In this document: piece after piece, positions 6,975 to 43,913 of the stretch
Numbering within the stretch: position 1 is the stretch's first letter
Layout of the letters: every line of letters begins with the position of its first letter
Sequence record: MN794232.1
Reading direction: 5' to 3' (one strand)
DNA: 64,000 nt
Made by a program: the position numbers and the translations under genes
The notes under the pieces: model-generated
What the model saw: the letters and a program-made list of their open reading frames with translations, nothing else
Told to the model about the DNA's origin: nothing
The model's database searches: none

Positions 6975-7757
6975 ATGTTGAGAACAAATATTGCGATTGA
7001 AGAACTGAAAATCCGAATGCATCCGTTCGATCAAGTTGCGAACGCAAACAACGACGATAGCTCAGTTCGCGACTGGCGGCAAATCCCTGACGTTGCTAAT
7101 GACAATATCCTGAAGAACTCGGTTCTACCGTCGTGGGTAATTCGAGAGTTTCACTGGCGTGATATTTCATTCAATCAACCATCAATGGGTGATCTGCCCG
7201 TTGAGTACAAAACAGAAGCAGGTGAAATTGGTAAGTGCCAATCGCATTATCTCGGTGAACTTGATGATTGCAAGTTCTGGCGCCCTGACATTGTATCTTT
7301 GAATGCTCAGTTCATTGATTCAAAAGACGTTGATAAAGCCCTTGCCGAATTGCAAGCCGTTGATGTGTTTGACGCTTCACAAGGATTCGCTGACGGTCGA
7401 CCTGACCCGGTTAGTCACAATGAACACGGTATCACCGATGATGAGCTTGAAGCTGCAATCGTCGAAGCTGAAATGGCAGCGGCTGTGGATGCTTTAAAAG
7501 TTGAGTCGCAATCGTTGTTCGATCCAGATCATGTTTATTACATGAATGAAAAGTATTATATTATCGGTGACGACCCGTTTGACGAAAATTACTGCTATGC
7601 GTTGAATGCTGCAAAATACCCACAGCGTATTGCAAAATCTCAACTCGTAACCGATGAGCAATACAAAGAAGCTGAAGTTTTGAAGAGTCAGTTCCCACAG
7701 ATGTGGACTGCTCAAGATTACGCAAAGCTTGCTAAGTTCATTCGCAGCAAAAAGTAG
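6975..7757 (+). CDS. hypothetical acidic protein
   Basis: 260-aa ORF. Confidence 0.7.
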   Translation: MLRTNIAIEELKIRMHPFDQVANANNDDSSVRDWRQIPDVANDNILKNSVLPSWVIREFHWRDISFNQPSMGDLPVEYKTEAGEIGKCQSHYLGELDDCKFWRPDIVSLNAQFIDSKDVDKALAELQAVDVFDASQGFADGRPDPVSHNEHGITDDELEAAIVEAEMAAAVDALKVESQSLFDPDHVYYMNEKYYIIGDDPFDENYCYALNAAKYPQRIAKSQLVTDEQYKEAEVLKSQFPQMWTAQDYAKLAKFIRSKK

Positions 7758-7785
7758 TTCCGATGCGGGTTGTTACGACATCCCG

Positions 7786-7793
7786 CATAAATA
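7786..7793 (+). promoter_or_regulatory. T4-type late promoter variant
   Basis: CATAAATA (consensus TATAAATA) 32 nt before ATG 7826. Confidence 0.6.
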
Positions 7794-7825
7794 GTTCTAT
7801 ATGGACTAACAAGGAAATTACGACA

Positions 7826-8356
7826 ATGCCAACTCCTACAACAGGTGCGATTTCAATCGGTACCGTTCGTGATTATTTCAGTAGAACCGGCGCTGCTTCA
7901 TTGTCTCAGTACTACAGAGGCGGCGGTATTGTTCCTGATATTACTGAAAATGCTCACGTACCAACTTCAGGCGCGATTAGCTTGAATGACTTGCGCGGTG
8001 TATATCGCTTGTCAACGTATACGACATCGTTTACGACAACATACAACACCACGGTTTCGACATCGAATACGACTTCGCGTAGTACGTCAAGAAGTACAAC
8101 TAGAAGTACTGCATACAATACAACTCGCTCGACTGCGTATACTACTACTTGGACAACTAGCCGAACTACGTCGGTGACTAAAGGTTCGTATTCGACATCA
8201 TACACGACTTCTCGTGCTACATCACGTTCAACATCATATAGCACGACACGTTCAACAGCTTATACGTCTACGTGGACAACATCATGGACAACTACGTACA
8301 ACACAACAATATCAACATCAAACACAACCTCGCGAAGCACGCAAGTTGCAGTTTAA
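7826..8356 (+). CDS. Ser/Thr-rich repeat protein, putative virion/tail-tip adhesin
   Basis: AAGGA RBS; N-terminal PTTGAIS...SLSQYYRGG...VPTSGAISL domain; 74 of 110 C-terminal residues are S/T. Confidence 0.75.
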   Translation: MPTPTTGAISIGTVRDYFSRTGAASLSQYYRGGGIVPDITENAHVPTSGAISLNDLRGVYRLSTYTTSFTTTYNTTVSTSNTTSRSTSRSTTRSTAYNTTRSTAYTTTWTTSRTTSVTKGSYSTSYTTSRATSRSTSYSTTRSTAYTSTWTTSWTTTYNTTISTSNTTSRSTQVAV

Positions 8357-8368
8357 CAGGGTTAAATT

Positions 8369-8587
8369 ATGAGCTACAATGAAGAACACGAGAACCGAAT
8401 CAACGAGCTTGAGAACAAGGTTTCAAAGCTTGAGTCGATAATTGAAAATCTGGTTGAGTCAATGACTTCGAACAGCGAAGCTATTATCGAACATATTGCA
8501 TCACTTGAGACCGAGAGAGATTCGATTCTTGCATCATATGATGACAAACTTAATGAGATCGTGACCAAATATGAACCCAAGCAATAG
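8369..8587 (+). CDS. small coiled-coil protein
   Basis: heptad pattern INELENKVSKLESII. Confidence 0.7.
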   Translation: MSYNEEHENRINELENKVSKLESIIENLVESMTSNSEAIIEHIASLETERDSILASYDDKLNEIVTKYEPKQ

Positions 8588-9425
8588 AGAAATGACTGGG
8601 TTCAATAACATTTCTCGCACCGGTAAGTTGAAATTACAAGCCGATGCAGACAACGTCCGTGCCATGTGTATGGACGTTGTTCGTTTATTGAACTCCAAAA
8701 ATATACCATCTAACTTCGACATCAATCACAATGACGGTGGTAACATCGGCGTGCATGAATGGGTGTCACAAATCCGCTTCATTCACTTGAAATACATGAA
8801 CGTTAATTTCCAAACGAAGATTTTCAAGCATGCCTATCATAACACTGAAAACGTCGTTGACTATTTTGACACGTTCAAACATTCTGACAAATATCATCTT
8901 TCAGCGAAGCCTCGATTCTTAGAATATGAAAACGTCGTATTTCTATGCGGATCGAATGTACTTGAAGTGGCAATTGACTTTGACAAGATTGATGCGTTGG
9001 TCGAACAATATCCCGATTTAGTGATCAAACCTCATCCGATTACGACGCTGTATTACATCAATATGCTTAAAACTCGATATGGATCGAATCGCGTGCTTTC
9101 TCAGAAGATCAGCGGTGTTGATGTTCTTAAATCTGCTAAACGTGTTTGGCTGCCTTCAACGTCTGAGTTCTGGTTTAGTGCCTTGAACTACGACAAAGAA
9201 ATCGGGTTTATCTCTAAAGATGGTTTCTGTGGAACGTACACGTCAATCATCAACGCAGTATGGGAATTGCATGAAGAAACCGGTGAGCCATTGAAAGATA
9301 TTGTGAATAAAATTATCTCGTCACCTTACTCAGGTCTGTATGGTAGTATGGCAGACTTTGAAGAGCATCACGAGAAATACTGTAATGTGATTCTAGAACT
9401 AGGGGGTAATTTCGATAATGTATGA
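8571..9425 (+). CDS. GT-B fold glycosyltransferase-like (capsule-synthesis/KpsS-like C-terminus)
   Basis: LVIKPHP and AKRVWLPSTSEFWFSALNYDKEI resemble KxHP and D-V-x-T-x-x-S-T/S-x-x-x-E-A-L motifs. Confidence 0.5.
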   Translation: MNPSNREMTGFNNISRTGKLKLQADADNVRAMCMDVVRLLNSKNIPSNFDINHNDGGNIGVHEWVSQIRFIHLKYMNVNFQTKIFKHAYHNTENVVDYFDTFKHSDKYHLSAKPRFLEYENVVFLCGSNVLEVAIDFDKIDALVEQYPDLVIKPHPITTLYYINMLKTRYGSNRVLSQKISGVDVLKSAKRVWLPSTSEFWFSALNYDKEIGFISKDGFCGTYTSIINAVWELHEETGEPLKDIVNKIISSPYSGLYGSMADFEEHHEKYCNVILELGGNFDNV

Positions 9426-10050
9426 TTATGTAATTCACACTTCGATTAGTGACAAAAGTCAGTTAAACCAACTAGCAATGTTTGTCGGGTCTTTCATCGA
9501 GACGCACAAAAAAGGTCGCGTGGTCTGCGTGACTGATCTTGAACTTGATTTCACGATGCCTCGATTGTCATTTGAGAAAAAACTACCCGAAGAGTACGTT
9601 TTCATTTCAGTTGACAATCTATTTTTGCAAAAAACGTACGGTGTGGTTAGCTACATTGATAGCGGCACTTGGCGATGTACTTGGCAAAAGAATGATCATG
9701 ATGAGTTCGTTATTAAAAAGCATGGCGAAAGAAGCGGGTTGATTCACCCTGATATTGCAATTGCAAATTACAATGTTTCTAGACATGGCGATCTCGACAT
9801 GTATTACAACGCGCTTCGTTATATTGAGAACGCCATCACGATCAACTGCAAAGACTTTGCTCCTGCTGCTGAGAATAAAATCAACAGCTTTTACACGCTT
9901 GTATTTCCATGGGAGATTTATTTTCACGTCATGATCACTTACCAAGAGTATATTGATTCTGAATACGTTGAGCGAGTTCGCGCTAACTGTCATAAGTTCG
10001 CACACTCAGTTTATTACAGAAAATCGGGGTTGTTGCGTGATGGGTTATGA
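9418..10050 (+). CDS. hypothetical, possibly GT-A-like transferase
   Basis: N-terminal beta-alpha-beta pattern (YVIHTSISD...VVCVTD); weak. Confidence 0.35.
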   Translation: MYDYVIHTSISDKSQLNQLAMFVGSFIETHKKGRVVCVTDLELDFTMPRLSFEKKLPEEYVFISVDNLFLQKTYGVVSYIDSGTWRCTWQKNDHDEFVIKKHGERSGLIHPDIAIANYNVSRHGDLDMYYNALRYIENAITINCKDFAPAAENKINSFYTLVFPWEIYFHVMITYQEYIDSEYVERVRANCHKFAHSVYYRKSGLLRDGL

Positions 10051-10723
10051 TGAGATAATTTTAGTATCTGGGCTTGATAGCTTAGTTCTATACGAATTTC
10101 TTGAACGAAAGCCACACCCTGTTTACTTTAAATGGGGATTTGCTATCGACGAACTTGAAATGGCTTCTTTGCCTGAAGAAACAACTATCATAGAAATGCC
10201 AGAGATTTTGCATTTGAAACATGATCCGTATGAGTTCAAGACGCCACGAAATCCCGATTTGATTGGTCGGAATACGTTGATGTTTAACTCAGTTTTTCAT
10301 GCATTCAGACCGAACGTAATTTATCGCGGGATGTTGAAGGGTGATGATTTCTATTACGACGCATCGCCTACGCATTCAGATGAAATCGCAGCTATGTGGT
10401 CGAAAATGCTGAATAAAGATTGTCGAATTGAACAACCGTTCAAAGACAAAACGAAACGTGACATAATGCAAATGGCGGTTGAATACGGGATTGACGCGAA
10501 TTCATTGCAGCATTGTTACAATCGAGAACATAACTGTGGTCGATGTAGCAAGTGTGTGGATGCACATGTTAATTCTATGTACACCGACAACCCAGACATC
10601 ATGTGGCTGAAACGAATAGTTAATGACTCGGGTATGGCATCATTGGCTAATCACATGTTTGGTGTTGATACAGTTGACAGAATAAAGGAATTTCTAGATG
10701 AATTTGATCGAACAGACTGCTGA
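10040..10723 (+). CDS. QueC-like PP-loop adenylyltransferase family protein
   Basis: VSGLDS PP-loop, RNTLM, PFKDKTKRDI, C..C-G-R-C-S-K-C zinc motif. Confidence 0.7.
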   Translation: MGYDEIILVSGLDSLVLYEFLERKPHPVYFKWGFAIDELEMASLPEETTIIEMPEILHLKHDPYEFKTPRNPDLIGRNTLMFNSVFHAFRPNVIYRGMLKGDDFYYDASPTHSDEIAAMWSKMLNKDCRIEQPFKDKTKRDIMQMAVEYGIDANSLQHCYNREHNCGRCSKCVDAHVNSMYTDNPDIMWLKRIVNDSGMASLANHMFGVDTVDRIKEFLDEFDRTDC

Positions 10724-11591
10724 TAAATTCGAGCATAGTTACCGAGAAGACGTTCAAGGTGTACAGTGGTATTTCGGTAGTCGAACGCATGATTTTTATC
10801 TGTATGGAATAGACTCTCTTATTGATAAAGTCAAAGACTGTGATTTTATTGAAATCAAGCATGTTCAAGAGGGTACGCTGGTTAAACGAGGCGAAGCTGC
10901 GGTCACGGTTACGATTACAGATCATAGTCGTATCGCATATGGGAACATGATTGAAACATTGTTGTACAATGAGTTGTGGTATTCGAGCACGGTCGGTACG
11001 ATTTTACACCGTTGTCTTGATGTGTTGCATGAAAACGGCTATGACGCTCGTTCAGCATACCCTCAAATCGGACGGGCGAGTTCAACGCCAGAACAGTCAG
11101 CTAAAGCAAGGGATGTGTTCGCACGTATATTTTATCAATCGTCGAATGAGAAAATACCCGTTGCGATGCACAGTGATATTCTAATCAACGGCGAGGAATA
11201 TTGCATGGAACATTATAACGGCATCATGATTGATACTTTCGATAAGCAAGCTTGCATTGACTTGATCAACAAGAAAGACTTTCGAGGGACTGTGATGGTT
11301 GACTCTCAGCCAATAATTGAAACAATTGAGAGAGTTCTAGCTGAAACAAAATGCTTTGTTGCACAAGCTGAAAGTGTTACACTCGATGAGTGGATAGAGA
11401 TAGTGCGACATTTTAAAGGCAATAAGCGAATTTTCTACGGGATTGGTAGCTTTGCATTTAGCAATATATCACGAGACACATTTGGTTTGATTTACAAAGT
11501 GTGTGCAGTTAAGAAAAACGACAACTGGATCGGAGTTTCAAAGATGACGACAGGTAAACAAACATCGGCTGGTTATAAGGTTATAGGTTAG
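10698..11591 (+). CDS. divergent NAPRTase/NAMPT-family phosphoribosyltransferase
   Basis: VQEGTLV, IETLL...LWYSSTVGT, MHS, IDTFD, VDS, GIGS, RDTFGLIYK parallel nadV motifs; short (297 aa). Confidence 0.65.
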   Translation: MNLIEQTADKFEHSYREDVQGVQWYFGSRTHDFYLYGIDSLIDKVKDCDFIEIKHVQEGTLVKRGEAAVTVTITDHSRIAYGNMIETLLYNELWYSSTVGTILHRCLDVLHENGYDARSAYPQIGRASSTPEQSAKARDVFARIFYQSSNEKIPVAMHSDILINGEEYCMEHYNGIMIDTFDKQACIDLINKKDFRGTVMVDSQPIIETIERVLAETKCFVAQAESVTLDEWIEIVRHFKGNKRIFYGIGSFAFSNISRDTFGLIYKVCAVKKNDNWIGVSKMTTGKQTSAGYKVIG

Positions 11592-11593
11592 TT

Positions 11594-12583
11594 ATGAATT
11601 ATTGTATAGCGCCGTTTACATCGCCGTCTATTACACCAGACGGTTTTAAAATTTGCAGCATGCCAGGTCAGAAAGTATACCCTGATATTTCATTCTGGAA
11701 TAGTGATGAAGTGATCAAGATTCGCGAACAGATTATCGCTGGTGAAATTCCTGAATCGTGCAAGGCATGTCGTAGTATGCGTGACGGGTTGATTGTGTCA
11801 AAAGAAAAACCAACTGATACTCATGTTGACTTGAATTTCAAAGCTCTTTACATTGCGCGGTCGAACAAGTGTGAATATGCTTGTGAAATGTGCAGTTCAT
11901 CAATCTCACATAGCTATGACAAGAAATACAATGACGGTAAGTTGGGGATTATTGAGAATGACTTTGATGTTATTCCGTATCTGCACGAAACACAAGCCGT
12001 TGCTATTTCGGGCGGGAACCCTGTCATTGACAAAAAGGTTGCAGAGATTCTTGAGAATCTAGACCCTGACGTGGTAGAACGTTTCATTATTACTTCAAAT
12101 GGGACAGTCTTTCCAGACAGATTCTTGAATGCAATTAAGAGATTGAAATGTGACGCGACTTTGATATTCTCTATGGACGGACCGAAAGAGTTTAATGAAG
12201 TGGTTCGATCTGGTGCGAAGCAAGAGAGAATCTATCGCACCATTAATCGAGTTCTTGACGAGATTGAAGATTACCCAAACTTGCATGTGGCAATTGAGTA
12301 TACTTTCACGAATAAGTCAATTCATCACTACGTTGATTTGTATGATGAAATGCTCTTCGAGATCAACCCGAAGCATTTGAAAAACAACTCAGTTAAAGTG
12401 ATTGCGAATATGTGTACATACCCGCATCACCTTAGCGTTACAACTGTTCCCAAAACCGTCATTGATGACATATTGTTCAATCAGTTGCCGTATTTGAGAC
12501 AGCAACCCAGCCCATTGTCAAATCAATTCAAACTTGGCTATGATAAGTTTTTGACTCAGTATCACAACAGCGTGATTATGTGA
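11594..12583 (+). CDS. radical SAM protein with N-terminal SPASM/twitch-like Cys domain
   Basis: CEYACEMC; ISGGNP; N-terminal CIAPF...C...CKAC. Confidence 0.85.
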   Translation: MNYCIAPFTSPSITPDGFKICSMPGQKVYPDISFWNSDEVIKIREQIIAGEIPESCKACRSMRDGLIVSKEKPTDTHVDLNFKALYIARSNKCEYACEMCSSSISHSYDKKYNDGKLGIIENDFDVIPYLHETQAVAISGGNPVIDKKVAEILENLDPDVVERFIITSNGTVFPDRFLNAIKRLKCDATLIFSMDGPKEFNEVVRSGAKQERIYRTINRVLDEIEDYPNLHVAIEYTFTNKSIHHYVDLYDEMLFEINPKHLKNNSVKVIANMCTYPHHLSVTTVPKTVIDDILFNQLPYLRQQPSPLSNQFKLGYDKFLTQYHNSVIM

Positions 12584-13700
12584 TCAGATCATACGCTTTG
12601 ATATGTGAGTAAAACTCTGGACACGCAGACGATAAATTAGTTTTCGTCTTCGTGTCTATTCTTTTGTTAAGAACAAAGAATTCAGGGTTGAATTTACAAA
12701 CACTGTGTTCCAGAGTAAGACATTCAGCAACGTGCTTAAATGGTCTAGCCAAATCCTCACGCCCATCTTTTAAATACGCTTCTTCTTTCACTTTGAATCT
12801 TGATAATAGCTGGTCTCGAAATGCAACTGGAATGTTGTAAATTGAGTATGGATTATCAGGCTCACCGACGACATGCACAGACAAACGTACACGTTTACCA
12901 TCATAAAGCGAATCAAAATCTGAAACCAATGTTTCAAGATGTTCAAGAGTCACGTTTGACACGGTCGCAGTGATAACTACATCAAAGTGTTGCTTGATGA
13001 CTTCAATGTTTGATTTGACTTTTTTGATGTCTGCAAACAATCGAATATAATCTTGGTATTCTCGTAGACCGTCGATTGATACGAACACCGTTGATGCATT
13101 AGCTTCTTTAAGCGATTTGATGAGATCTGAGCCATCGGCTAACACTAGTGATGAGCCATTCGTGAAAATATTCACTGCGGCTTTAATGTCGCCTACGTTG
13201 CGAAGAACTTCAGGAGCATTTGACGAGCGGGTAATTTCACCGCCTAGAATTGTCAATGACGAAAGTCCTTTGCTGATTGTGTTGATTGTCGTACTCAAAT
13301 CATTGAATCGAGTACTTGAATCTTCTTCATTGAACAATCTAGCCTTCAAGTCTGATAATTTGCTGTAGCAGTAACGACAAGCTTGATTACATTCATTACT
13401 AGGGAATACTTGTAGCCAGCGAACTGAATCAGCGGGCATAATAGGTGAAACTTCAGAATCGTGTTCTGTTAGACGCTGTGGGTCATTATCAGTAATGCAC
13501 ATTTGACATGCCTTTGACAGCTTGCTCATGTCGTGGTTTAGCATTGCTTCACGATAAGCGACAAGCTTTTCATCATTCCAAGCGTCTGCTAGTGTTTTTT
13601 CATCAGTAAACCATTCATAATCAGCCGAACAGCAAAACGTAATTTGATTGTTTGCTCGTGTGATGAACTGCTTGAACGGCATATAACATAGTGGTTTCAT
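12576..13700 (-). CDS. radical SAM protein with N-terminal SPASM/twitch-like Cys domain
   Basis: CNQACRYC; LGGE; CYMPF...CC...CQMC. Confidence 0.85.
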   Translation of the reverse strand: MKPLCYMPFKQFITRANNQITFCCSADYEWFTDEKTLADAWNDEKLVAYREAMLNHDMSKLSKACQMCITDNDPQRLTEHDSEVSPIMPADSVRWLQVFPSNECNQACRYCYSKLSDLKARLFNEEDSSTRFNDLSTTINTISKGLSSLTILGGEITRSSNAPEVLRNVGDIKAAVNIFTNGSSLVLADGSDLIKSLKEANASTVFVSIDGLREYQDYIRLFADIKKVKSNIEVIKQHFDVVITATVSNVTLEHLETLVSDFDSLYDGKRVRLSVHVVGEPDNPYSIYNIPVAFRDQLLSRFKVKEEAYLKDGREDLARPFKHVAECLTLEHSVCKFNPEFFVLNKRIDTKTKTNLSSACPEFYSHIKAYDLIT

Positions 13701-13710
13701 GTTTCTGTCC

Positions 13711-14283
13711 TTAGTTAAAAATGCTACTTGTATATATAGCAGTCTTCAGGGCATTGAAATGATCGTCAACTCTATTCACGTGTATGCATTCAATGTCAAA
13801 TCTTTCTTGGATTTCTCGGATGTTGTCTAGCGAGTCGTCGATGAAGTATTTCACCTCATGCAGTTCACACAGCTTCTCGACATACTTTGCCTTCGAGTCG
13901 AAGTACTCAATCGAAATCACCTCACTTATCATCCCTGGGAATAACGCATTTAGATTATACACGCGATTTGACCATGAAGTTCTACTCATGCTGAACTTGG
14001 TTAGTGCAATGATGTTATATCGGTCTGAGAGTTCGCGTAACGCATCGTAAGCGTCTTCATATGCGGGTATGTACTTTGCACACTCATGTTCATTGTATGC
14101 GCCTATAAGCTTTCCTAGTTGCATGTCACTCACGTTAATAAATAAAGAGCGTGCATCGGTATCAGTATTTGAACCGTTGATATTCAAATTATCAAGCATG
14201 CCTAATTGCATCATGAAGAATGGCAAGTTGGCTTTCCAGTTAAGCAAAACCCCGTCTACATCTATGATGATCGTCTTTTTCAT
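13711..14283 (-). CDS. HAD-family phosphatase (5'-nucleotidase-like, T4 30.2-like)
   Basis: DVDGVL motif I; FIDDS motif IV. Confidence 0.8.
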   Translation of the reverse strand: MKKTIIIDVDGVLLNWKANLPFFMMQLGMLDNLNINGSNTDTDARSLFINVSDMQLGKLIGAYNEHECAKYIPAYEDAYDALRELSDRYNIIALTKFSMSRTSWSNRVYNLNALFPGMISEVISIEYFDSKAKYVEKLCELHEVKYFIDDSLDNIREIQERFDIECIHVNRVDDHFNALKTAIYTSSIFN

Positions 14284-19575: not shown

Positions 19576-20628
19576 TCAATTTACCATTTTGATTTGAATT
19601 TGATTGTCCATGTAAGCCATTTTCTTTTCAAATTCAACATCATATTCTGGTCGATGTTCGTATTCGACTGAAAGCATTTGCTTCAGACAACGGTACAATT
19701 CCGACTTGTAATACCCTTCTTTCATTCCCTTCATCTGTTCATATTGCTTTTTCATAGCAGCTTTGATTATCTTCGGGTCCATGAATTTGATTGACATTTC
19801 TCGCGGTGCTTTTACTGTGCCAAAGTCAACAAACACCTGAGCCTTTTCAGCTACTTGAATGAAGTCATAAATCGTGTCATAACTCATTCGACTTAGCGTG
19901 TGGTGCATACAAACATGTTTGCTATGTTCTTTTAGCAACGGTACATTTGCAAGCATCAAGTCGTGGTCGATGTTCTGACGAATGTATTCGTTGCGCTCTT
20001 TTCCGCCGTCACATGAAATTGTAAACACTAGACGATGTTTGTACTTTTTACATATGGCTAGAATCTTCTTCGCAAGTGGCGTATGCAACACAGTACCATT
20101 TGTCAGGATGTAAACTTCCGCGTTTGTTTCTTCCATGACTTCAGTCAGAACTTCGACTGTTCTCTTGTCCATGAACGGTTCGCCGCCGTATAGCACAACA
20201 GTTTCAACACCCTTCGGGATGCTGAAATCGAGTTGTGTGTAATCGTAGTGGTCGTCAATGTCATACAAGTCCATGTATGTTTTGCTATTCTTGCCATAGC
20301 ACATTCGACACGCTAGGTTACATTTGTTTGACATCAATATTTGAATTGTTCTAGGATGCTCTTCGAGTGCTTCATATTCGAAGTACTTCTGATCAGACAA
20401 TTCGCCATAACTCATACATTCTTTGCAGTATTCTGGTAAAGTGTCATACTCAAACATTTTGGCACGATGTTCATTGATGATGTCACTGTGCCACCAGTCT
20501 TCAACGTTCGGGAATGGTTCACTTAGCTGAGAACAGCAAATGTGATACCCATCTGGTTTTGCGTCACGTGTATTAAAGGGAGAGCCACAAAGTGGTCTCT
20601 TCCCGTCTTTAAATCCGAATTTATCCAT
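19576..20628 (-). CDS. radical SAM protein with N-terminal SPASM/twitch-like Cys domain
   Basis: CNLACRMC; YGGEP; CGSPF...CC...CKEC. Confidence 0.85.
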   Translation of the reverse strand: MDKFGFKDGKRPLCGSPFNTRDAKPDGYHICCSQLSEPFPNVEDWWHSDIINEHRAKMFEYDTLPEYCKECMSYGELSDQKYFEYEALEEHPRTIQILMSNKCNLACRMCYGKNSKTYMDLYDIDDHYDYTQLDFSIPKGVETVVLYGGEPFMDKRTVEVLTEVMEETNAEVYILTNGTVLHTPLAKKILAICKKYKHRLVFTISCDGGKERNEYIRQNIDHDLMLANVPLLKEHSKHVCMHHTLSRMSYDTIYDFIQVAEKAQVFVDFGTVKAPREMSIKFMDPKIIKAAMKKQYEQMKGMKEGYYKSELYRCLKQMLSVEYEHRPEYDVEFEKKMAYMDNQIQIKMVN

Positions 20629-20900
20629 TAATCTATCTCATCGAGAAGTGATTGAAATTCTTCGTCGCGTTCAGCGTCGATTGTGCCAGTCATCAACTCT
20701 GTTAGAGTCTTCAACGACTTGATCTCTGGTGGTTGAGGGCGTAGATCTTCGAGAATGTGAATGATTGACTCGGCTGGGAGATCGTGATTTACGATCTCAT
20801 CTGGCAGGTGGTGTTTGTAAACGCAGTCGTCGCCCCAATCAATAACTACTGCATGTTCCCATTTGTCGATTTCTAGTATTTTAAAATTTGGTTTCATCAT
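20628..20900 (-). CDS. hypothetical protein
   Basis: ORF coupled to both neighbours; start MMKPNF. Confidence 0.6.
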   Translation of the reverse strand: MMKPNFKILEIDKWEHAVVIDWGDDCVYKHHLPDEIVNHDLPAESIIHILEDLRPQPPEIKSLKTLTELMTGTIDAERDEEFQSLLDEID

Positions 20901-21898
20901 AAGCCCCAGAGTTCTTTCCAATGTGTTTTAGCATCTTGTCGATACTTCTCAATGTCAAATTTTTGATATTTCTGTTCGATTGCATCATCAATGACGCGAA
21001 TCAACGTATCATTGTTTATATCAGCACGAATCACTGGGAAAATAAAATCCCTTGTGTAAGGTGCGTCATGCTGAACAATACAAGGTATGTACTGACATGC
21101 TTCTAATAACGCATATGGCATAATCTCGATTCGAGACATGTGAAGCAAAACTTTACTTTTCATCATATGTGCTATGACTCGCTCACGCCGTTGACAAGTT
21201 TCGACTATACAATCAACCCCACTCGGGATTCTTATTGATTCGGTTGTGAATAGACGAATTTTAAGACCGCTGTATGCAAGCGCGTTTAGCATTTCGGGTA
21301 TCTGCTTACGTTTGTATGCACCTGACACGATAATCACGTCAGACGCTTCAGCAGCGTCAATATCAGCTTGTGATATAGACGGAAGCTCAAATGGTTCAAA
21401 TGCAGTCACATGTTTGCCACCAATTACTTCTCGACCCCATTGTGCAATCCCGTTCGATTGAGCAATGTTAGTGACTAATGACGTTGACATCATGTGTCGC
21501 CATTGAGGTAAATTGTAAATTTGATGAATGTCCATGTATTCGCGATATGAATCTGGTACTATCAAGTCACCGAAATGATGTTGGTTGTAACAACGGCGCT
21601 TCGCTTCGATACATGCGCGGAGTGCTTCATATGAATGCGTGTAGATAATCGCTTCGCTATCAATCGCGTTGATAACCATTGCGTTTGCCTTGTAGTCTTT
21701 ATAAGACCGTTTCGTTAAAATGAAGTCACACTCGAAATCCCATTTACTCACGTGTGGACACGATTCGTCTCCGAGTACAATAACTTTGACATCACAGTTT
21801 AGTGATTGCATTAAACGAACGTGATCTTGAATGAATGTGTAAATACCGCCGCCAATTCCCAACATAAAGTCAGTTACTACGTAGCGAACTTTTTTCAT
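20897..21898 (-). CDS. GT4-family glycosyltransferase
   Basis: N-terminal GIGGG; C-terminal SRIEIMPYALLEA (E-x7-E). Confidence 0.7.
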   Translation of the reverse strand: MKKVRYVVTDFMLGIGGGIYTFIQDHVRLMQSLNCDVKVIVLGDESCPHVSKWDFECDFILTKRSYKDYKANAMVINAIDSEAIIYTHSYEALRACIEAKRRCYNQHHFGDLIVPDSYREYMDIHQIYNLPQWRHMMSTSLVTNIAQSNGIAQWGREVIGGKHVTAFEPFELPSISQADIDAAEASDVIIVSGAYKRKQIPEMLNALAYSGLKIRLFTTESIRIPSGVDCIVETCQRRERVIAHMMKSKVLLHMSRIEIMPYALLEACQYIPCIVQHDAPYTRDFIFPVIRADINNDTLIRVIDDAIEQKYQKFDIEKYRQDAKTHWKELWGL

Positions 21899-36546: not shown

Positions 36547-37122
36547 TCACTGTACTTTCTTAGTTCGCTTGTCAATCTCGTGAACTTTACTTTCAAGATT
36601 GTCAATACGAGTATTAAGCATTTCTCCATCTTTCCCTGTAAAGCGGTCAGTTGAATCAATGTTAATCAATGTCTCGACTCTGGCTAAATCAGTCTCAATC
36701 TTAGAGTAACGTGAATGGGTACTGTCTATCTTAGTAATAATGGCGTTCTGAGTACTTTTAATACTCTCCACTGAGTTTACTAGATTTTTGTCGCCCAACT
36801 CCGACGCACTCCTCAATGCTCTTACTTCGCTCTCAAGACTACCATAGTTTACAAGCACTTGATCTTGCTTTTTAACGATAAGAGCTTGCGCCCCTTCTAA
36901 GCCAATCAGTTGTTGTGCCTGCGTTGCGTTTGTTAGTTTGATGTCAGTTATTTCTTGCATGATTTTAGCGTTTTGAGCAACTGCGGTTTTACCTTGTTCT
37001 TGGACAACTTGTAATGCTTCTTGCATACTACCGTAGTTTGTCGCAACGCTCATTGAGGTGATAGCCAGAGGGATAAGAATAGTACCTATAACAGCTAACA
37101 AAAATTGCGCCATTTTACTCAT
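36547..37122 (-). CDS. membrane-anchored coiled-coil protein, late (position of holin in T4-like gene order)
   Basis: N-terminal TM; exact late promoter upstream. Confidence 0.55.
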   Translation of the reverse strand: MSKMAQFLLAVIGTILIPLAITSMSVATNYGSMQEALQVVQEQGKTAVAQNAKIMQEITDIKLTNATQAQQLIGLEGAQALIVKKQDQVLVNYGSLESEVRALRSASELGDKNLVNSVESIKSTQNAIITKIDSTHSRYSKIETDLARVETLINIDSTDRFTGKDGEMLNTRIDNLESKVHEIDKRTKKVQ

Positions 37123-37169: not shown

Positions 37170-37177
37170 TATTTATA
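37170..37177 (-). promoter_or_regulatory. T4 late promoter
   Basis: TATAAATA on minus strand. Confidence 0.75.
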
Positions 37178-40100
37178 AACGAAGCAACTTCTTCCACCAT
37201 GGGCGTTTAAGCTCTTGTACTTCGTTCTGAAGCGTGTCTACTTTTGCATTAAGCTCTTTAATAGCTTCAATCAAAAGACCGTTCATATTGCCGTACGCGA
37301 CTGATAGAATACGATCTTCGTCGTCACTTTCCATCACTGCTTCTGGCAGTACTTTTTCCACTTCTTGCGCAATCACACCCGTTTCACGAATATATTCGTC
37401 GGAATCGAATGAACTACGCTTGTCATATGTATACCCGTTTAATTCACCTACTTTATTGAGTGCATTGTCAATAAGCTTGATGTTTTTCTTCAAACGTCGG
37501 TCTGAGTACGCTGTCACGTTACCTGGAGCAGTGAAGTTACCAGTTGAATACTGAAATGACCACTGCTTAGTCGTTGAGCTATTCAGAGACGATACGATCT
37601 GAGCCGTATGCGCTCCCGAAGAACTCAAAATTGCACCGAATGAGTGCTGATAACGACCACCCGAGTGGTTAATATCACCTTTCATGAAAGCATGATATTC
37701 ACTACTACCCGAACTTGATTTGTAGTGGTAAAACGGAGCTTGTGACGTGTAATGCGAAGCATATGCATATGATGCCGCAGATCCGTAAGCCGTCATCCTA
37801 CCCGTAGACAACAATGCACTTTGAACTGTTACATCAGTAAAGTCATTCCCATAGTTGACAATCAAGTTTGACGTTGTACCAACCAATGCTCTCTTATCAC
37901 GAATCTTGAAATCTTGACCGCCATTTGAGCTAATCAAAGAAGACCCGAGATAGGTTGCTGTGGTAGCAGTCGTAGCCGATGTCGCCGTCGTAGCCGATGT
38001 CGCGTTGCCACTCAGAGAACCCACGAATGTCGGCGCTGTTACACTATGCGCAAACACCGCAGTTCCGTTTTCGTTCAACCTGAAGTCATCAGATGCACTA
38101 CCGTTGTATCTAAACGCCATGACGCCGTTTTGATGGTCAAGCTGCCAGTAGTTATCGCTGTACGTACTGTCCATCAAGTTCAATTGAACATTCGTGTGTC
38201 GAATCGTCAACTGTCCATTGATCGTATCCCCTGCTTTGCTAACCGCACCAATTTCAGCTAATGACCATGCAACGTTAGCAGATCCGTTTACTGATTTGCC
38301 AGTGTTACCGATTGTCAATGTACGAGCCGTTGTCCATGTGTCGGCATTCGGGTGATAAATGTCGGTGAATACCTGAGCCCATGATTTCCATATACCATTT
38401 TCTTGCGTTCGAACAAACCATTTATTCAAACGCCAGTCACTTGCCAGTTGAGTTTGCCACAAATCACTATAGGATTGTGTCAAAACTGCATGATCTTGAC
38501 CCGACGGCTTATTAGTAGCAGTTGACGTAGCATACATGAATGAATATCCGCTACCATCACCCGCTGTATCGAGGTTGCTCGTGCTAATGTTAGACAAATA
38601 TGGCGTTAAGATTCTTCCAGTGAATGTATCCCCTGCAACATTCGCGAATCGAGCATCAGATTCAGCTTCAGTGTAGTATCGACCATCGTGAGTATGAGAG
38701 TCATTTGCCACGGTAACTGTCATTGTCGCATTTGAGCTACCGTCAAACGAAACTGCGCCACTTACATCGCCGTTTAGCGTCAGCGTACGAGCAGTTGTCC
38801 ATTTGTCAGCATTCGGATGATAACCGTCATGAAATACATTGTTGCTTCCGTATTTCAAAGTACCGTCAATCGAAGATAAAACCCCATCAATACCCCAGAA
38901 ATTAGGGTGATAGTTGCCGCCAGTATTGACAAACTCATGGTAAACTTCAACAGTATAGTTCGATGTGTGCCATGTCGAAACAGCAGGATCCCCATCTACA
39001 TCAATGAAGAAATTGATTCTATTACTACTTGCCGCAGATTGAGTAGTATTAACAACTGTCCATGCTCCGTTGATATTAGTGAATGTCGCGCTAGATGCCG
39101 AGTCAGTAGTTCCAGTGCCCGTAATTACAGCTCGTACACGGATAGAGCCTTGCGTAATCGCAGCCCCATTTTGGTCTAACAACTTAGCAGGAGCATTGAT
39201 GTTTACTGCATAGTCTCTGCGATACTTGTACATCCCGCCGTAGAAATCACCCGTGATCTCTTTAGCTGTCCATGTTACATTACTCGTACCATCTACTGAC
39301 TTACCAGTGTTACCGATTGTCAACGTTCTTGCAGTTGTCCATTTGTCAGCATTCGGGTGATAAGCATCGTGAAACACACGTTGGTTTACTTTCGCGAAAA
39401 TCTCACCTTCAACTTCAAGACCAGCAGGTGAAGCAACACCGCCATTCTGACGCAGAATCAATGCCTGACCATTACCACCAGCCGTGTTAATATCACCGTC
39501 AGTGATCTCGTGAATCAACTCAAGGTTTTGACCAGCACTTGTAATCCAGTTGATGCCTGAATTGTTGTTTGCGTAATCAGTTTCATTGAAACTCAAACGC
39601 CCGCCAGCTTTGCTAATTGCAACGTTACCAGTGAACGTATCGCCAGCCACGTTAGCAAAACGAGCATCAGATTCTGTTTCAGTGTAGTAACGACCATCAT
39701 GCGTGTGTGAATCGTTCGCTACAGTCGCTGTAACGGTCACAGTTGCGTTAGCCGACCCATCAATCGTCATAGACGCAGAACCGCTTACATCGCCCGTTAG
39801 AGTCGTTGTGAGCGTGCGTGCAGTTGTCCACTTATCAGCATTTGGATGATAACCGTCGTGAAACACATTGTTATCTTTGTACTTGATCGCAGTTGTATTA
39901 ACAACAAACCCACTTGCAGTCGCTGAACCGACTTGCAACGTACCATCAGTACGAACTAGAGACGAGCCGAAGTATACCCCAGTTGTAAATGCGGCTTGGT
40001 CATTGATTCTCAACCATGAATCAAATCCGCGAAATGCAGTTTTCGCGTTGATGTCAATGTTCTCAATGCCGAAGTTTGCTGCCGTTGCATCAATACGAAA

Positions 40101-40502
40101 TCGAGTTGTCGCTGTATCATTTTCACGTAAACTAAAATTACCACCATCGTTGATCAGATACCAACGCTTTGTACCGTCATTATCTTGAAGCAACAGACGC
40201 GGAGAACCACCTCGAATCTCAATTTCATTCGCCGTATTTGTCAGTTTACCCGTCATCGTATCGCCGATCTTTTGAACGTAGCCACCGCCCGCAATCGGGG
40301 CAAATCGAGCATCAGATTCAGCTTTTGTAAATGCAGAAGTCGTCCCACCGTTACCTAGTTCGCCTGGCAGTGGTGTGTCGTGTTCTGTGTAAATTTTGTA
40401 GCCTTGGTAGCGGATAGTCTCGCCTTGCGGGTCAAAGCGAAGATTTCCTCCGTGCCAGACTATATTACCACCAATTGCGGTAGTTGATCTTAGTTCTGCC
40501 AT
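37173..40502 (-). CDS. long tail fibre distal subunit (gp37-like) with C-terminal peptidase S74 chaperone
   Basis: fibre repeats; YSDRRLKKNI...GVIAQEV...VAYGNM. Confidence 0.9.
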   Translation of the reverse strand: MAELRSTTAIGGNIVWHGGNLRFDPQGETIRYQGYKIYTEHDTPLPGELGNGGTTSAFTKAESDARFAPIAGGGYVQKIGDTMTGKLTNTANEIEIRGGSPRLLLQDNDGTKRWYLINDGGNFSLRENDTATTRFRIDATAANFGIENIDINAKTAFRGFDSWLRINDQAAFTTGVYFGSSLVRTDGTLQVGSATASGFVVNTTAIKYKDNNVFHDGYHPNADKWTTARTLTTTLTGDVSGSASMTIDGSANATVTVTATVANDSHTHDGRYYTETESDARFANVAGDTFTGNVAISKAGGRLSFNETDYANNNSGINWITSAGQNLELIHEITDGDINTAGGNGQALILRQNGGVASPAGLEVEGEIFAKVNQRVFHDAYHPNADKWTTARTLTIGNTGKSVDGTSNVTWTAKEITGDFYGGMYKYRRDYAVNINAPAKLLDQNGAAITQGSIRVRAVITGTGTTDSASSATFTNINGAWTVVNTTQSAASSNRINFFIDVDGDPAVSTWHTSNYTVEVYHEFVNTGGNYHPNFWGIDGVLSSIDGTLKYGSNNVFHDGYHPNADKWTTARTLTLNGDVSGAVSFDGSSNATMTVTVANDSHTHDGRYYTEAESDARFANVAGDTFTGRILTPYLSNISTSNLDTAGDGSGYSFMYATSTATNKPSGQDHAVLTQSYSDLWQTQLASDWRLNKWFVRTQENGIWKSWAQVFTDIYHPNADTWTTARTLTIGNTGKSVNGSANVAWSLAEIGAVSKAGDTINGQLTIRHTNVQLNLMDSTYSDNYWQLDHQNGVMAFRYNGSASDDFRLNENGTAVFAHSVTAPTFVGSLSGNATSATTATSATTATTATYLGSSLISSNGGQDFKIRDKRALVGTTSNLIVNYGNDFTDVTVQSALLSTGRMTAYGSAASYAYASHYTSQAPFYHYKSSSGSSEYHAFMKGDINHSGGRYQHSFGAILSSSGAHTAQIVSSLNSSTTKQWSFQYSTGNFTAPGNVTAYSDRRLKKNIKLIDNALNKVGELNGYTYDKRSSFDSDEYIRETGVIAQEVEKVLPEAVMESDDEDRILSVAYGNMNGLLIEAIKELNAKVDTLQNEVQELKRPWWKKLLRL

Positions 40503-43500: not shown

Positions 43501-43849
43501 TCGATTCACGTCTGATAATCTGCCATTGATTGACATCACCATCATAGTGATAACGCACACCGTGATTTCCGTTGTCTTCCGTTAGATATAGACTAGCATC
43601 GGTGTTTGCAGTACTGCTCAAATGCAATTGCGCAGTCGATTTAGCGATTTGCAAATCGCCACTCATGACATCACCCGCACGTTTAACAACAGACTCGGTT
43701 AAATCTGTATGAGGGTCTGGCTTGTCATTTTCTGTATAAAGTTTGTAGCCATTGTAAAGTACTGTTTCTCCTTGCGGATCGAAACGCAAATTACCGCCAT
43801 GCCAAACTATGTTACCGCCAATCGCGGTTGTTGAACGTAATTCTGCCAT
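40574..43849 (-). CDS. second long tail fibre distal subunit (gp37-like) with S74 chaperone
   Basis: same 29-aa N-terminus MAELRSTTAIGGNIVWHGGNLRFDPQGET; YSDARVK...GVIAQEV...VAYGNM. Confidence 0.9.
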   Translation of the reverse strand: MAELRSTTAIGGNIVWHGGNLRFDPQGETVLYNGYKLYTENDKPDPHTDLTESVVKRAGDVMSGDLQIAKSTAQLHLSSTANTDASLYLTEDNGNHGVRYHYDGDVNQWQIIRRESNSESVVMYGSRSNNNVVINGIGYLNTTQRIFADNYHPNADKWTTARTLTLSGEVTGSVSIDGSSNVTISTVVPNHTTYAEVGLSASNPEYIATGRTLSGVDTTVDWDTLYRGGFYNKLSQGLNRPAGFTGYWYAQTMTYGSTTNATQVAYPYGISGNSGTIALRTRYADVWEDWVYMYHTGYHPEADKWTTARTLTLSGDVSGSVSFDGSSNISLAVTVADDSHTHDGRYYTEAESDARFVNSTGDTMTGYLNVPTTQAQSSNVVYGFGGTSAGKIGSMQLSSGDIDDYQRSGFIDVNSSITGTPAEETGWMWGVHTEHNNGNGYAMTLAMGQNTNRLWWKRRESGVSSAWMKIFDDEYHPLADKWTTARTLTLNGDVSGSASIDGSSDVTLSVVVANDSHTHDGRYYTETEADARFAPIAGGGYVQKTGDTMSSSLIITDSAGNTAPASETIKVDKFGLIGNRGAVYLHNSNAAGEIALGVGGILADNKQFSVKSTSITSTVNITAPTFIGALSGNATTATSATSATQATKWTTARTLTIGKTAKSVDGTANVSWSTQEVTGTNGAGQISFGSNNRVTTAEFISLLSARGAFSTWYWTCRGSWSYAAQVTVDTGFGVFGTAGSVIEVHGTSTTNCTIKVITPTTASGATARQEFIYIDNGSGYSPGWRANYNSSYHPLADKWTTARTLTLNGDVSGSASIDGSANVTLSVAVADDSHNHTHSDGSFTVNGTLISTGVSSYDKIRVWSSGSYTIGMASAQSFGWLNDYAMTFTMNNDTDRGFLWRDEGDAATDGAMSLTTGGNLMVKNVIALGGDTTRYMQNSANEGSWVFRSDNGKTWHFGARNTSWIHNSTDATSGFYYYQSIQSAGNITAYSDARVKTNVERITNPLEKIDRLNGYTYDRTDVECPRQTGVIAQEVLEVLPEAVVESGGDADGHYAVAYGNMVGLLIEGIKEEKRKREALEERIARLEALLS

Positions 43850-43913
43850 TAGTTTCATTCCATTTATTGAAATTTTTCATATGACAGTATTTATTATGCC
43901 GTAAAAAAGGGCG

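Follow-up and report, generated by a model that had tools for sequence, protein, structure and literature searches.

In mycobacteriophages and other actinophages, phage-encoded glycosyltransferases (GTs) modify Ser/Thr-rich extensions of capsid and tail proteins. To our knowledge, glycosylation of virion proteins is essentially unexplored in T4-like phages and in other phages of Gram-negative bacteria. Here we analyze a gene cassette in a stretch of 64,000 nucleotides (nt) from sequence record MN794232.1 (hereafter the window; coordinates without further designation refer to it), corresponding to KVP40.0254-0262 of Vibrio phage KVP40 and opening with a gene for a small, extremely Ser/Thr-rich (S/T-rich) repeat protein that is followed by genes for a coiled-coil protein and several putative enzymes. 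Our reading, to which we assign a probability of about one half, is that the cassette specifies an accessory appendage protein, made late, along with the enzymes and helpers for its decoration. This is a concrete alternative to the published label of the locus: the counterpart in phage 6E351A (VP6E351A_0314-0326) has been described as an "ancestral anti-defense island", replaced in K566 and K567, on the basis of weak matches to QueC/CBASS and viperin models (PMC12028318).

The source DNA is Vibrio phage VH1_2019, a KVP40-type Schizotequatrovirus: positions 7700-12700 of the window are 100% identical to VH1_2019, and KVP40 and 12 more records of the same group exhibit 96.5-98.5% identity over this region. 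The original prediction, made from the sequence alone, delimited an operon at 7786-12583 (KVP40.0254-0260) and listed, downstream of the S/T-rich protein, a coiled coil, a KPHP GT-B-like transferase, a possible GT-A protein, which has 210 amino acids (aa), and QueC-like, phosphoribosyltransferase (PRTase)-like (NAPRTase-like) and radical S-adenosylmethionine (SAM) enzymes. All of these genes are present; the extent proved too short. A second radical SAM gene and a haloacid dehalogenase (HAD)/T4-30.2-like gene on the minus strand are convergent on the array and co-conserved with it, and the unit therefore spans 7763-14283 (KVP40.0254-0262), with the following features.

7763..7788, plus strand: stable hairpin in the interval from the KVP40.0253 homologue to the S/T gene, with a 3' arm that runs into the promoter-like box
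7786..7793, plus strand: late-promoter-like box CATAAATA, 32 nt 5' of the ATG; putative function
7826..8011, plus strand: residues 1-62 of the S/T protein (KVP40.0254 homologue), forming its N-terminal module; conserved, and present in fibre-adjacent small proteins of other phages
8012..8356, plus strand: Thr/Ser period-4 repeat region, residues 63-176 and stop codon; evident from composition, periodicity and repeats
8369..8587, plus strand: 72-aa helical/coiled-coil protein (KVP40.0255 homologue; phrog_5851, 2.3e-19)
8571..9425, plus strand: HP-motif protein of 284 aa, a candidate GT-B-like transferase (KVP40.0256 homologue; AlphaFold2 model, Foldseek, motif)
9418..10050, plus strand: 210-aa protein, tentatively GT-A-like (KVP40.0257 homologue; weak fold matches)
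10040..10723, plus strand: non-canonical QueC-family PP-loop enzyme (KVP40.0258 homologue; Pfam QueC, 5.5e-9)
10698..11591, plus strand: truncated NAPRTase/NadV-like protein (KVP40.0259 homologue; Pfam NAPRTase, 1.6e-6; phrog_448, 4.3e-37)
11594..12583, plus strand: radical SAM enzyme 1 of the N-terminal-twitch type (KVP40.0260 homologue; Radical_SAM, 2.9e-9)
12576..13700, minus strand: radical SAM enzyme 2, a paralogue convergent with enzyme 1 with an 8-nt overlap (KVP40.0261 homologue; Radical_SAM, 1.3e-11)
13711..14283, minus strand: HAD-like / T4 30.2-like protein (KVP40.0262 homologue; phrog_420, 9.7e-39; weak HAD match)

The stop codon of the S/T gene is separated from the start of the coiled-coil gene by 12 nt, the downstream genes overlap successively by 17, 8, 11 and 26 nt, and a 2-nt gap precedes the gene for radical SAM enzyme 1.

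The S/T protein is the 176-aa product of the open reading frame (ORF) 7826-8356. Ser and Thr account for 64.5% of its last 110 residues, so that the extreme S/T content reported previously is real, while the figure then given (67 percent) has to be corrected. The 4-residue periodicity and the internal duplications noticed at the same time are both borne out: the non-S/T residues recur with period 4 (autocorrelation counts of 27, 26 and 25 at lags 4, 8 and 12 vs about 10 at neighbouring lags; normalised values 0.51, 0.48 and 0.42), and exact repeats comprise a 10-mer found twice (residues 78 and 163), a 7-mer found twice (residues 70 and 155) and another 7-mer found three times (residues 91, 99 and 140). 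The C-terminal 114 residues form two arms around a short V-T-K-G-S turn. Among the five lineages of Vibrio phages that carry the cassette (see below), the C-terminal sequence has diverged past simple alignment, with retention of the composition (Thr, Ser, then Arg, Tyr, Trp, Asn) and of the period of 4; two lineages have V-T-K-G-S at the central turn, where 6E35.1a, F86 and D479 have a Lys-Gly pair with a Cys residue on either side. In comparisons inside the KVP40 group, 1-10 non-synonymous and 3-16 synonymous changes fall in the repeat region, whose length is constant, and 0-1 non-synonymous codon changes in the N-terminal module. Pfam searches with the S/T protein returned zero matches, NCBIfam only a low-complexity "serine-rich" match, and the label "cell wall mannoprotein" carried by the protein in some records was rejected as a composition artefact.

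Gene finders frequently miss genes of this kind: short spurious ORFs take the place of the S/T gene in the D479, F86 and re-annotated 6E351A records (loci L005, L006 and L007), and a 953-aa Thr-rich ORF on contig L021 (3987-6845) is left uncalled. As a result, the databases searched in proteomics lack such proteins. The virion proteome of 6E351A comprises 94 proteins, none of them from VP6E351A_0311-0326, with NadV and an upstream protein detected (PMC12028318). In the annotation of that genome, the region of the uncalled S/T gene is covered only by a fragment of 36 aa, an ORF of 29 aa on the minus strand and a lengthened coiled-coil ORF (PMC12028318), and the proteome is for this reason silent on the S/T protein. 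It does show that the cassette enzymes are not virion parts, as expected of enzymes rather than structural components (PMC12028318). Our literature search found no virion proteome of KVP40.

KVP40.0256 represents a family of transferase-like proteins. A word-based homologue search with this protein alone yielded two clusters only, and the family emerged after a profile had been built from phage loci; this profile retrieves 121 database proteins, none of which has a Pfam domain or an informative name. The AlphaFold2 (AF2) model of KVP40.0256 (85 sequences; predicted local distance difference test (pLDDT) 84, predicted TM-score (pTM) 0.85) was compared with known structures using Foldseek. All four matches in the PDB at E <=0.001 are structures of the beta-Kdo (3-deoxy-D-manno-oct-2-ulosonic acid) transferase WbbB (best E-value 1.2e-4, probability 1.0, TM-score normalised to the query (TMq) 0.43-0.45), and lower-ranked matches include KrkA, LpxB, WaaC, SdgB, GtfA/B and other GT-B enzymes. 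The search of BFVD returned KVP40.0256 itself and a Cr30-like protein first, with a "capsule polysaccharide biosynthesis protein" and glycosyltransferases among the matches ranked below them. The match to the GT-B fold is partial, the N-terminal half being reduced. The invariant positions in the 85 sequences of the family are K153, H155, P156 and T158 of the motif K-x-H-P-x-T, together with G-x-N and K-Y. The weak sequence matches of the family (GT52, KpsC/Capsule_synth, polysialyltransferase) all align around the H-P segment: the profile alignment to KpsC superimposes it on the H-P segment of KpsC with a non-significant E-value (0.15), the GT52 score of 18.8 bits is below the threshold (cut-off 26.1), and the Capsule_synth (6.1e-3) and polysialyltransferase (0.26) matches are each found in one family member only. 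We consider KVP40.0256 to be a GT-B-like, HP-motif transferase candidate that is not a demonstrated member of any CAZy family; the GT-B-like assignment of the K-P-H-P protein in the original prediction agrees with the AF2 model and its Foldseek matches, almost all of which are GT-B enzymes.

The pairing of the 0256 family with repeat proteins in phages of Vibrio, Caulobacter and uncultured freshwater/marine hosts is the strongest argument for a joint function. We read thirteen contexts outside Vibrio phages, and in 13/13 the 0256-family gene follows a gene for a long fibre-like late protein and a coiled-coil gene of 49-66 aa. In T4-like genomes it is succeeded by a partner gene of 250-330 aa and then by the neck genes gp13, gp14 and gp15, terminase and sheath; in contigs L021 and L022 the partner gene is followed by genes other than neck genes; and in the podophage Lullwater the 0256-family gene comes after a tail-fibre gene and a gene for a 215-aa protein. 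The upstream proteins are of two classes. Class A (DLP_6, L015, L019, L030-L032) consists of non-repetitive, fibre-like proteins of 1,200-1,380 aa with 22-26% S/T. Class B (L017, L018, L020, L021, L022, L033, Lullwater gp41, gp254 of Caulobacter phage Cr30) consists of extremely Thr/Ser-rich proteins of 116-1,329 aa with short-period repeats and an S+T content of 40-51%, except for Cr30 gp254, which is Thr/Tyr-rich (S+T 27%); Lullwater gp41 has a period of 4 too (autocorrelation 0.38). The upstream protein is extremely Thr/Ser-rich in five of the six non-Vibrio clades. An S+T content of at least 40% is found in 24 of the 1,106 ORFs of >=100 aa in the 531 kb of loci fetched, and 18 of these 24 are encoded directly before the coiled coil and the 0256 homologue. 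The correspondence between the Vibrio coiled-coil protein and the small coiled coils of the other phages is a positional analogy only (hhalign probability 17%), and homology of KVP40.0257 to the "partner" proteins was not accepted as demonstrated (hhalign probability 2.8%). Contig L022 (9537-12478) has, in the vicinity of its 0256-family module, one gene that faintly matches sialyltransferase family 29 and a radical SAM/SPASM gene.

The distribution of the cassette was determined by tblastn searches of 50,697 phage records with the N-terminal 66 residues of the S/T protein, KVP40.0256, KVP40.0257, the QueC-like protein and radical SAM enzyme 1 as queries. All five were found in the same 35 records of Vibrio Straboviridae, which form five lineages (the KVP40 group; QD01/VS1/VS2; the 6E35.1a/D48x/K5xx group; D479; F86) with about 35-80% protein identity between them and the same gene order, except that radical SAM enzyme 1 has moved upstream in D479 and that 6E35.1a and F86 have one extra gene. 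The upstream neighbour KVP40.0253 is present in 49 records, 16 of which are without any cassette gene (among them VH7D, ValKK3, phi-Grn1, phi-ST2, PVA23, XZ1, Va3, R10Z, R11Z, nt-1, CZ01, K566 and K567). Orthologues of radical SAM enzyme 1 (>=50% identity) are restricted to the 35 cassette-bearing records, and the HAD/T4-30.2-like gene is kept beside the cassette in QD01, D479, 6E35.1a and F86. Judged by these searches, the cassette behaves as one accessory block, inherited all-or-none; the co-conservation of the enzymes with the S/T protein, whose absence the original prediction had named as refuting it, was observed in that 35 records have all five genes and 16 sister records none.

Between the KVP40.0253 homologue and NadV lies a slot at which cassettes are exchanged (L023 9812-10913; L025 10789-14168; L024 9835-18735). 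In VH7D it is occupied by a gene for a 177-aa protein with the N-terminal module of the S/T protein (hereafter the N-module) and a PagP-like gene; in nt-1 by a gene for a 402-aa N-module FG-GAP protein, followed by NadV; and in K566 by a lipoprotein-like 475-aa gene, several radical SAM genes, a GT8 gene, a GT4-like gene and PagP. The cassette region of 6E35.1a includes an NTP-transferase. In QD01 (L002 11920-13095) an extra ADP-heptose:lipopolysaccharide (LPS) heptosyltransferase-like gene, which the window does not have, lies between the 30.2-like gene and NadV. Inheritance as a block and the sugar enzymes in neighbouring or replacing cassettes (K566, 6E35.1a, QD01) are the reasons for which we tie the tailoring enzymes to the repeat protein.

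The N-module (about 62 aa) has no Pfam family. Of the 14 KVP40-group records, 13 have it with 100% identity and the remaining one with 98.5%; in the 6E35.1a, D479 and F86 lineages the identity is 49-55%. The N-termini of VH7D gp152 (177 aa) and nt-1 ORF127 (402 aa) are of the same type (hidden Markov model (HMM) E-values of 1.9e-14 and 9e-15), and continue into an unrelated C-terminus and an FG-GAP propeller (7e-64), respectively; by sequence, the exchange slot described above is thus a place for N-module proteins whose C-terminal part is exchangeable. Two metagenomic proteins (P0001 and P0002) couple the N-module to other C-terminal domains, which in P0002 is Gly_rich_2. Outside Vibrio phages the module heads small proteins encoded immediately 3' of tail-fibre genes in Xanthomonas RTH11, Stenotrophomonas DLP_6, Ralstonia YL1 and Burkholderia JC1, in line with the statement of the original prediction that it occurs in small proteins next to S74-bearing tail fibres. 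The fibre gene 5' of the N-module gene in JC1 is endosialidase-like according to its authors (PMC9144972). This occurrence beside fibre genes supports the idea that the module may be a docking head. In the Xanthomonas jumbo phage RTH11 (L008 5001-7154) four small genes follow the giant tail-fibre gene and at least two of them start with the N-module, which suggests that these paralogues are alternative tip or accessory proteins. The class A proteins (1,200-1,380 aa; L015 4182-7787, L019, L030-L032) have a common N-terminus with two short segments of the S-x-L/I-S-D-V type, reminiscent of the N-module; the N-module HMM did not detect these proteins.

The fibre genes of the window itself are about 30 kb away from the cassette and non-adjacent to it. 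They are two paralogous genes at 37173-40502 and 40574-43858 (both on the minus strand) for proteins of 1,109 aa and 1,094 aa, each with a gp36-like N-terminal part and a C-terminal Peptidase_S74 chaperone domain; the KVP40 RefSeq record annotates one of the two and has a 3.4-kb unannotated gap at the other. A likeness of the S/T protein to the T-even adhesin gp38 had also been suggested, and Pfam and PHROG searches gave no gp38 match. The accompanying statement that no gp38 follows the two fibres left unmentioned a late-looking 191-aa ORF (36547-37122, minus strand; KVP40.0297 homologue) immediately downstream of the second fibre gene. Pfam gives no match for this ORF, and a box 47 nt upstream of it is an exact match to what we take to be the T4 late-promoter consensus; we regard its product as a candidate fibre-associated protein.

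The hairpin at 7763-7788 (fold of -14.3 kcal/mol, z -3.2, 0/200 shuffles as good) ends at its 3' side inside the CATAAATA box; its stem arms are retained in QD01 with a different loop. The 7-base core of the box also occurs 29 and 30 nt 5' of the ATGs of the two S74 fibre genes in the same window, one of which has the identical C variant. TAAATA-core boxes lie at similar distance 5' of three of four orthologues (QD01, 6E35.1a and F86), the upstream region of the D479 orthologue being without a clear late-type box, and similar boxes are also found 5' of the replacing slot genes in VH7D and nt-1. The promoter argument is built on the window's own fibre genes rather than on the 8-base T4 late-promoter consensus with which we also searched. 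The late promoter of the original prediction is accordingly retained as a box with the core seen 5' of both S74 fibre genes and a putative promoter function, and late transcription of the S/T gene and of the whole array would be a reasonable expectation from the shared box. The search for sigma-70-type promoters showed no enrichment in the region (26 found vs 23.5 expected), and that for a clear intrinsic terminator inside the array found none. In 6E35.1a (L005, about 8945-9000) the hairpin arms flank the promoter-like box rather than precede it, i.e. the arrangement of hairpin plus box is retained in a reorganised form.

The 72-aa coiled-coil protein matches phrog_5851 (2.3e-19) and otherwise only coiled-coil families, weakly; it is conserved in all five lineages with 16 invariant columns. 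KVP40.0257 is found only in 35 Vibrio phage records (tblastn), with 12 relatives in an exhaustive search, and no named relative was identified by phmmer against the PDB, by profile search of the PDB or by exhaustive phmmer. Its AF2 model (pLDDT 72.8, pTM 0.76) is unreliable at residues 76-117 (pLDDT below 50), a stretch that includes the nearly invariant D96. The Foldseek matches are all weak and all to enzymes of the GT-A/Stealth type (CpsY, best E-value 5.7e-3; WrtF; B4GALNT1; glycogenin; a GT8 protein with TMq 0.46), and the "possible GT-A protein" predicted earlier is kept as a tentative GT-A-like candidate.

KVP40.0258 is identified as a QueC-family protein by Pfam (5.5e-9; 36.3 bits vs the gathering cut-off of 22) and, over its full length, by the PADLOC QueC model (4.9e-13), and falls far short of the NCBIfam QueC equivalog (28.5 bits vs the cut-off of 150). 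With the motif definitions of PMC13082051, all five lineages retain a variant P-loop S-G-[LI]-D-S and the four-Cys motif, with a shorter spacing before the Cys triad. By these sequence criteria it is a member of the QueC family, though a non-canonical one. KVP40.0259 matches Pfam NAPRTase (28.5 vs 20.8) and phrog_448 (4.3e-37) and scores 63.5 against the cut-off of 405 of the NCBIfam equivalog; it is 33% identical over 78 aa to the window's own NadV, whose first ~70 residues have no counterpart in it, and is a truncated distant paralogue of the phage's NadV. The two radical SAM enzymes have the motif C-x3-C-x2-C at residue 93 (with four N-terminal Cys residues) and at residue 104 (with N-terminal Cys pairs), respectively. 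The best match of both is NF033640, the model of the N-terminal-twitch subfamily (3.4e-34 and 5e-37; scores of 118.6 and 127.9 vs a cut-off of 170). Their QueE label in the VH1 record was rejected, as the QueE models match at 1e-6 to 1e-7 vs E-34 for NF033640. A role of the QueC-like and radical SAM genes in the DNA 7-deazaguanine pathway was rejected as well: this pathway is a separate core cluster (PMC12028318), and nt-1, with reported DNA modification, is without the cassette. Elsewhere in the window (19576-21898, minus strand) a third radical SAM gene of the N-terminal-twitch type (350 aa) is followed by genes of 97 aa and 333 aa, a trio also found in nt-1; for the 333-aa protein a match to PF00534 (GT4) is noted in the KVP40 record, and our searches identified no Pfam family at E 1e-3.

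We propose that the S/T protein is probably borne on the virion and that its 62-aa N-terminal module would act as a docking head, like that of the fibre-adjacent small proteins in unrelated phages. The C-terminal 114 residues would constitute a hydroxyl-rich array of units of the type [bulky or basic]-x-T-[S/T], arranged in two arms with one turn, and this array may be the acceptor for O-glycosylation by KVP40.0256. The latter would be a GT-B-like enzyme of the HP-motif class, which includes CMP-ulosonic-acid (Kdo, sialic acid) transferases; among its fold matches are SdgB and GtfA/B, both enzymes of protein O-glycosylation. KVP40.0257, tentatively GT-A-like, and the small coiled-coil protein would probably assist. 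The QueC-family protein, the NadV-derived PRTase-like protein, the two twitch radical SAM enzymes and the HAD-like protein could represent an extension specific to Vibrio phages that would serve to synthesise or tailor the donor sugar or the glycan on the protein. Ribofuranosylation of glycans that depends on phosphoribosyl pyrophosphate has been linked to a PRTase and phosphatase pair. The location on the virion, the relation of acceptor and enzyme, the nature of the sugar and the tailoring role of the extra enzymes are what we infer from the gene data.

Several points weigh against a decorated appendage. Both the glycosylation of the S/T protein and its presence in the virion are inferred rather than observed. 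The fold match of KVP40.0256 is moderate (TMq 0.43-0.45), every sequence match of it to a named glycosyltransferase family is below the threshold of that family, and the fold assignment of KVP40.0257 is weak. Among the cassette genes we identified none for an activated ulosonic-acid donor. In class A, which is one large clade of the 0256 family, the upstream protein contains only 22-26% S/T and is without short-period repeats. Outside Vibrio phages the 0256 module comes without QueC-like, PRTase-like and radical SAM genes, whose link to the S/T protein could be mere synteny. The neighbours of the cassette in VH1_2019 are non-structural genes, the fibre genes being 30 kb away, and the N-module protein of JC1 (gp60) was undetected in virions, as were 2 of the 3 JC1 fibres (PMC9144972).

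On the view of an anti-defence or defence island, the QueC-family, radical SAM and NadV-like proteins would act on nucleotides or on host immune signalling, the S/T protein being an unrelated neighbour. Besides the matches given in Table S8 of PMC12028318 (CBASS__QueC 1.6e-6, pVip 2.6e-4), our PADLOC analysis of the window proteins reported QueC at 4.9e-13 and pVip at 3e-12 and 1.4e-6; QueC-family proteins perform protein deazaguanylation in Qat and in type IV CBASS (cyclic oligonucleotide-based antiphage signalling system), and NadV, an NAD-reconstitution gene, is next door. However, the pVip matches span the radical SAM core only and NF033640 is far better (E-34, E-37), no CD-NTase, TGT-like protein, QatA/B/D or other partner is present in the cassette, and PADLOC has zero matches for the S/T protein, KVP40.0256, KVP40.0257 and the PRTase-like and HAD-like proteins. 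Elsewhere the 0256 family is encoded in structural gene clusters, and the cassette that replaces this one in K566, rich in glycosyltransferases and with PagP, points to surface chemistry. We therefore hold an anti-defence or defence island to be unlikely. The same applies to a remodelling of the host envelope, in which the enzymes would modify host LPS or capsule (e.g. against adsorption to debris, or to exclude other phages) and the S/T protein would not be their substrate. It would agree with the closest solved relatives of KVP40.0256 being LPS/capsule enzymes (WbbB, KpsC, LpxB, WaaC), with PagP in the slot of the sister phages, with the lipoprotein-like, GT8 and GT4-like genes of K566 and with the heptosyltransferase-like gene nearby in QD01, but is hard to square with the repeated adjacency of 0256-family genes to genes for Thr-rich or fibre-like late proteins in neck/tail clusters of lytic phages of unrelated hosts, and with Vibrio cassette genes that overlap or abut the S/T gene behind a late-type box.

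Two further explanations leave the repeat protein at the centre and dispense with the glycan. Thr, Tyr, Trp, Val and Ile favour beta structure, and the two arms around a conserved turn (Cys-flanked in three lineages) could be a beta-hairpin or beta-helical fibre that remains unmodified, with the coiled coil and KVP40.0256 as folding or attachment chaperones, the latter keeping a transferase-like fold; small coiled-coil proteins and dedicated chaperones are common beside the fibre genes of T4-like phages. The absence of the helpers from virions would be in agreement with this (6E351A, PMC12028318). The K, H, P, T and G-x-N positions, invariant in 85 sequences, are however situated in the nucleotide-binding half typical of HP-motif transferases, where such conservation is expected of a catalytic or ligand site, and the other cassette enzymes would be left without a role; we rate this explanation as quite improbable. 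Alternatively, the two twitch enzymes might cross-link the repeat through C-C or C-O bonds at its regularly spaced Tyr, Trp, Arg and Asn residues, in the manner of ribosomally synthesized and post-translationally modified peptides but on a full-size protein. Arg, Tyr, Trp and Asn do dominate the non-S/T positions at fixed spacing, both radical SAM enzymes weakly match many peptide-modifying SPASM/twitch maturases, and the coiled-coil protein has a marginal match (E 0.034) to a protein of the CXXX-repeat peptide modification system. All peptide-modification matches are far below the cut-offs, though, the Thr-rich repeat proteins of other phages have no adjacent radical SAM genes, and the paralogous radical SAM gene present at another place in the window, and also in nt-1, has no repeat protein associated with it, which makes cross-linking very unlikely.

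If the proposal of an appendage protein decorated by its own cassette is true, ~120 "hypothetical" phage proteins gain a function, a class of extreme low-complexity and often uncalled genes is explained, and marine and freshwater phage particles acquire a new layer of surface chemistry that bears on adsorption and on the stability of the particle. What began as an odd KVP40 gene has become a recognisable module in very distant phages: a Thr-rich or fibre-like late protein, a coiled coil and a member of the GT-B-like family, near neck/tail genes. We also speculate, while considering it unlikely, that these proteins constitute an undescribed, widespread "threonine-tetrad" class of appendages, from 116 to >1,300 aa, built or decorated by an adjacent family of ulosonic-acid-type transferases, to which QueC, phosphoribosyltransferase and radical SAM chemistry has been added in the KVP40 type, giving a post-translational modification of a new kind (an amidated, ribosylated or radical-tailored sugar, or a nucleobase-type adduct).

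Compared with described systems, KVP40.0256 is closest in structure to WbbB (GT99), its best structural match, and shares with WbbB, KpsC/KpsS (GT107) and GT52/GT38 the invariant H-P in the C-terminal Rossmann-like half; it differs from them in scores below the thresholds, a TM-score of about 0.45, a much reduced N-terminal half and a presumed acceptor that is a protein rather than a glycolipid. KVP40.0258 resembles Cap9 (type IV CBASS) and QatC in its full-length match to the PADLOC QueC model and in being a non-canonical preQ0 synthase by the curated cut-off, whereas the partner proteins of these systems are not present, its P-loop is a variant one and its neighbours are sugar-type enzymes; as regards membership in type IV CBASS, Qat or viperin systems, PADLOC matches only QueC and radical-SAM-core models among the cassette proteins. 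T-even gp38 is likewise a small modular protein with a conserved N-terminal part, which in the S/T protein would dock on the fibre, and a variable C-terminal part, and the relative P0002 joins the N-module to a glycine-rich domain; in contrast to gp38, the S/T protein has no sequence or family match to it and its gene is 30 kb from the fibre genes. The serine-rich-repeat and Ser-Asp-repeat adhesins of Gram-positive bacteria also combine a hydroxyl-rich short-period repeat protein with dedicated GT-B enzymes encoded beside it (GtfA/B, SdgA/B). Here the repeat is a phage-borne, Thr-centred tetrad with aromatic or basic residues and no export system, and the likeness of the enzymes is one of fold class only. 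Virion glycosylation in actinophages involves another host phylum and phage family and GT2/GT4-type enzymes instead of an HP-motif GT-B-like one, and the putative acceptor here would be a separate small modular protein or a giant Thr-repeat fibre; common to both is the arrangement of transferase genes beside a structural-type protein with a Ser/Thr-rich C-terminal region.

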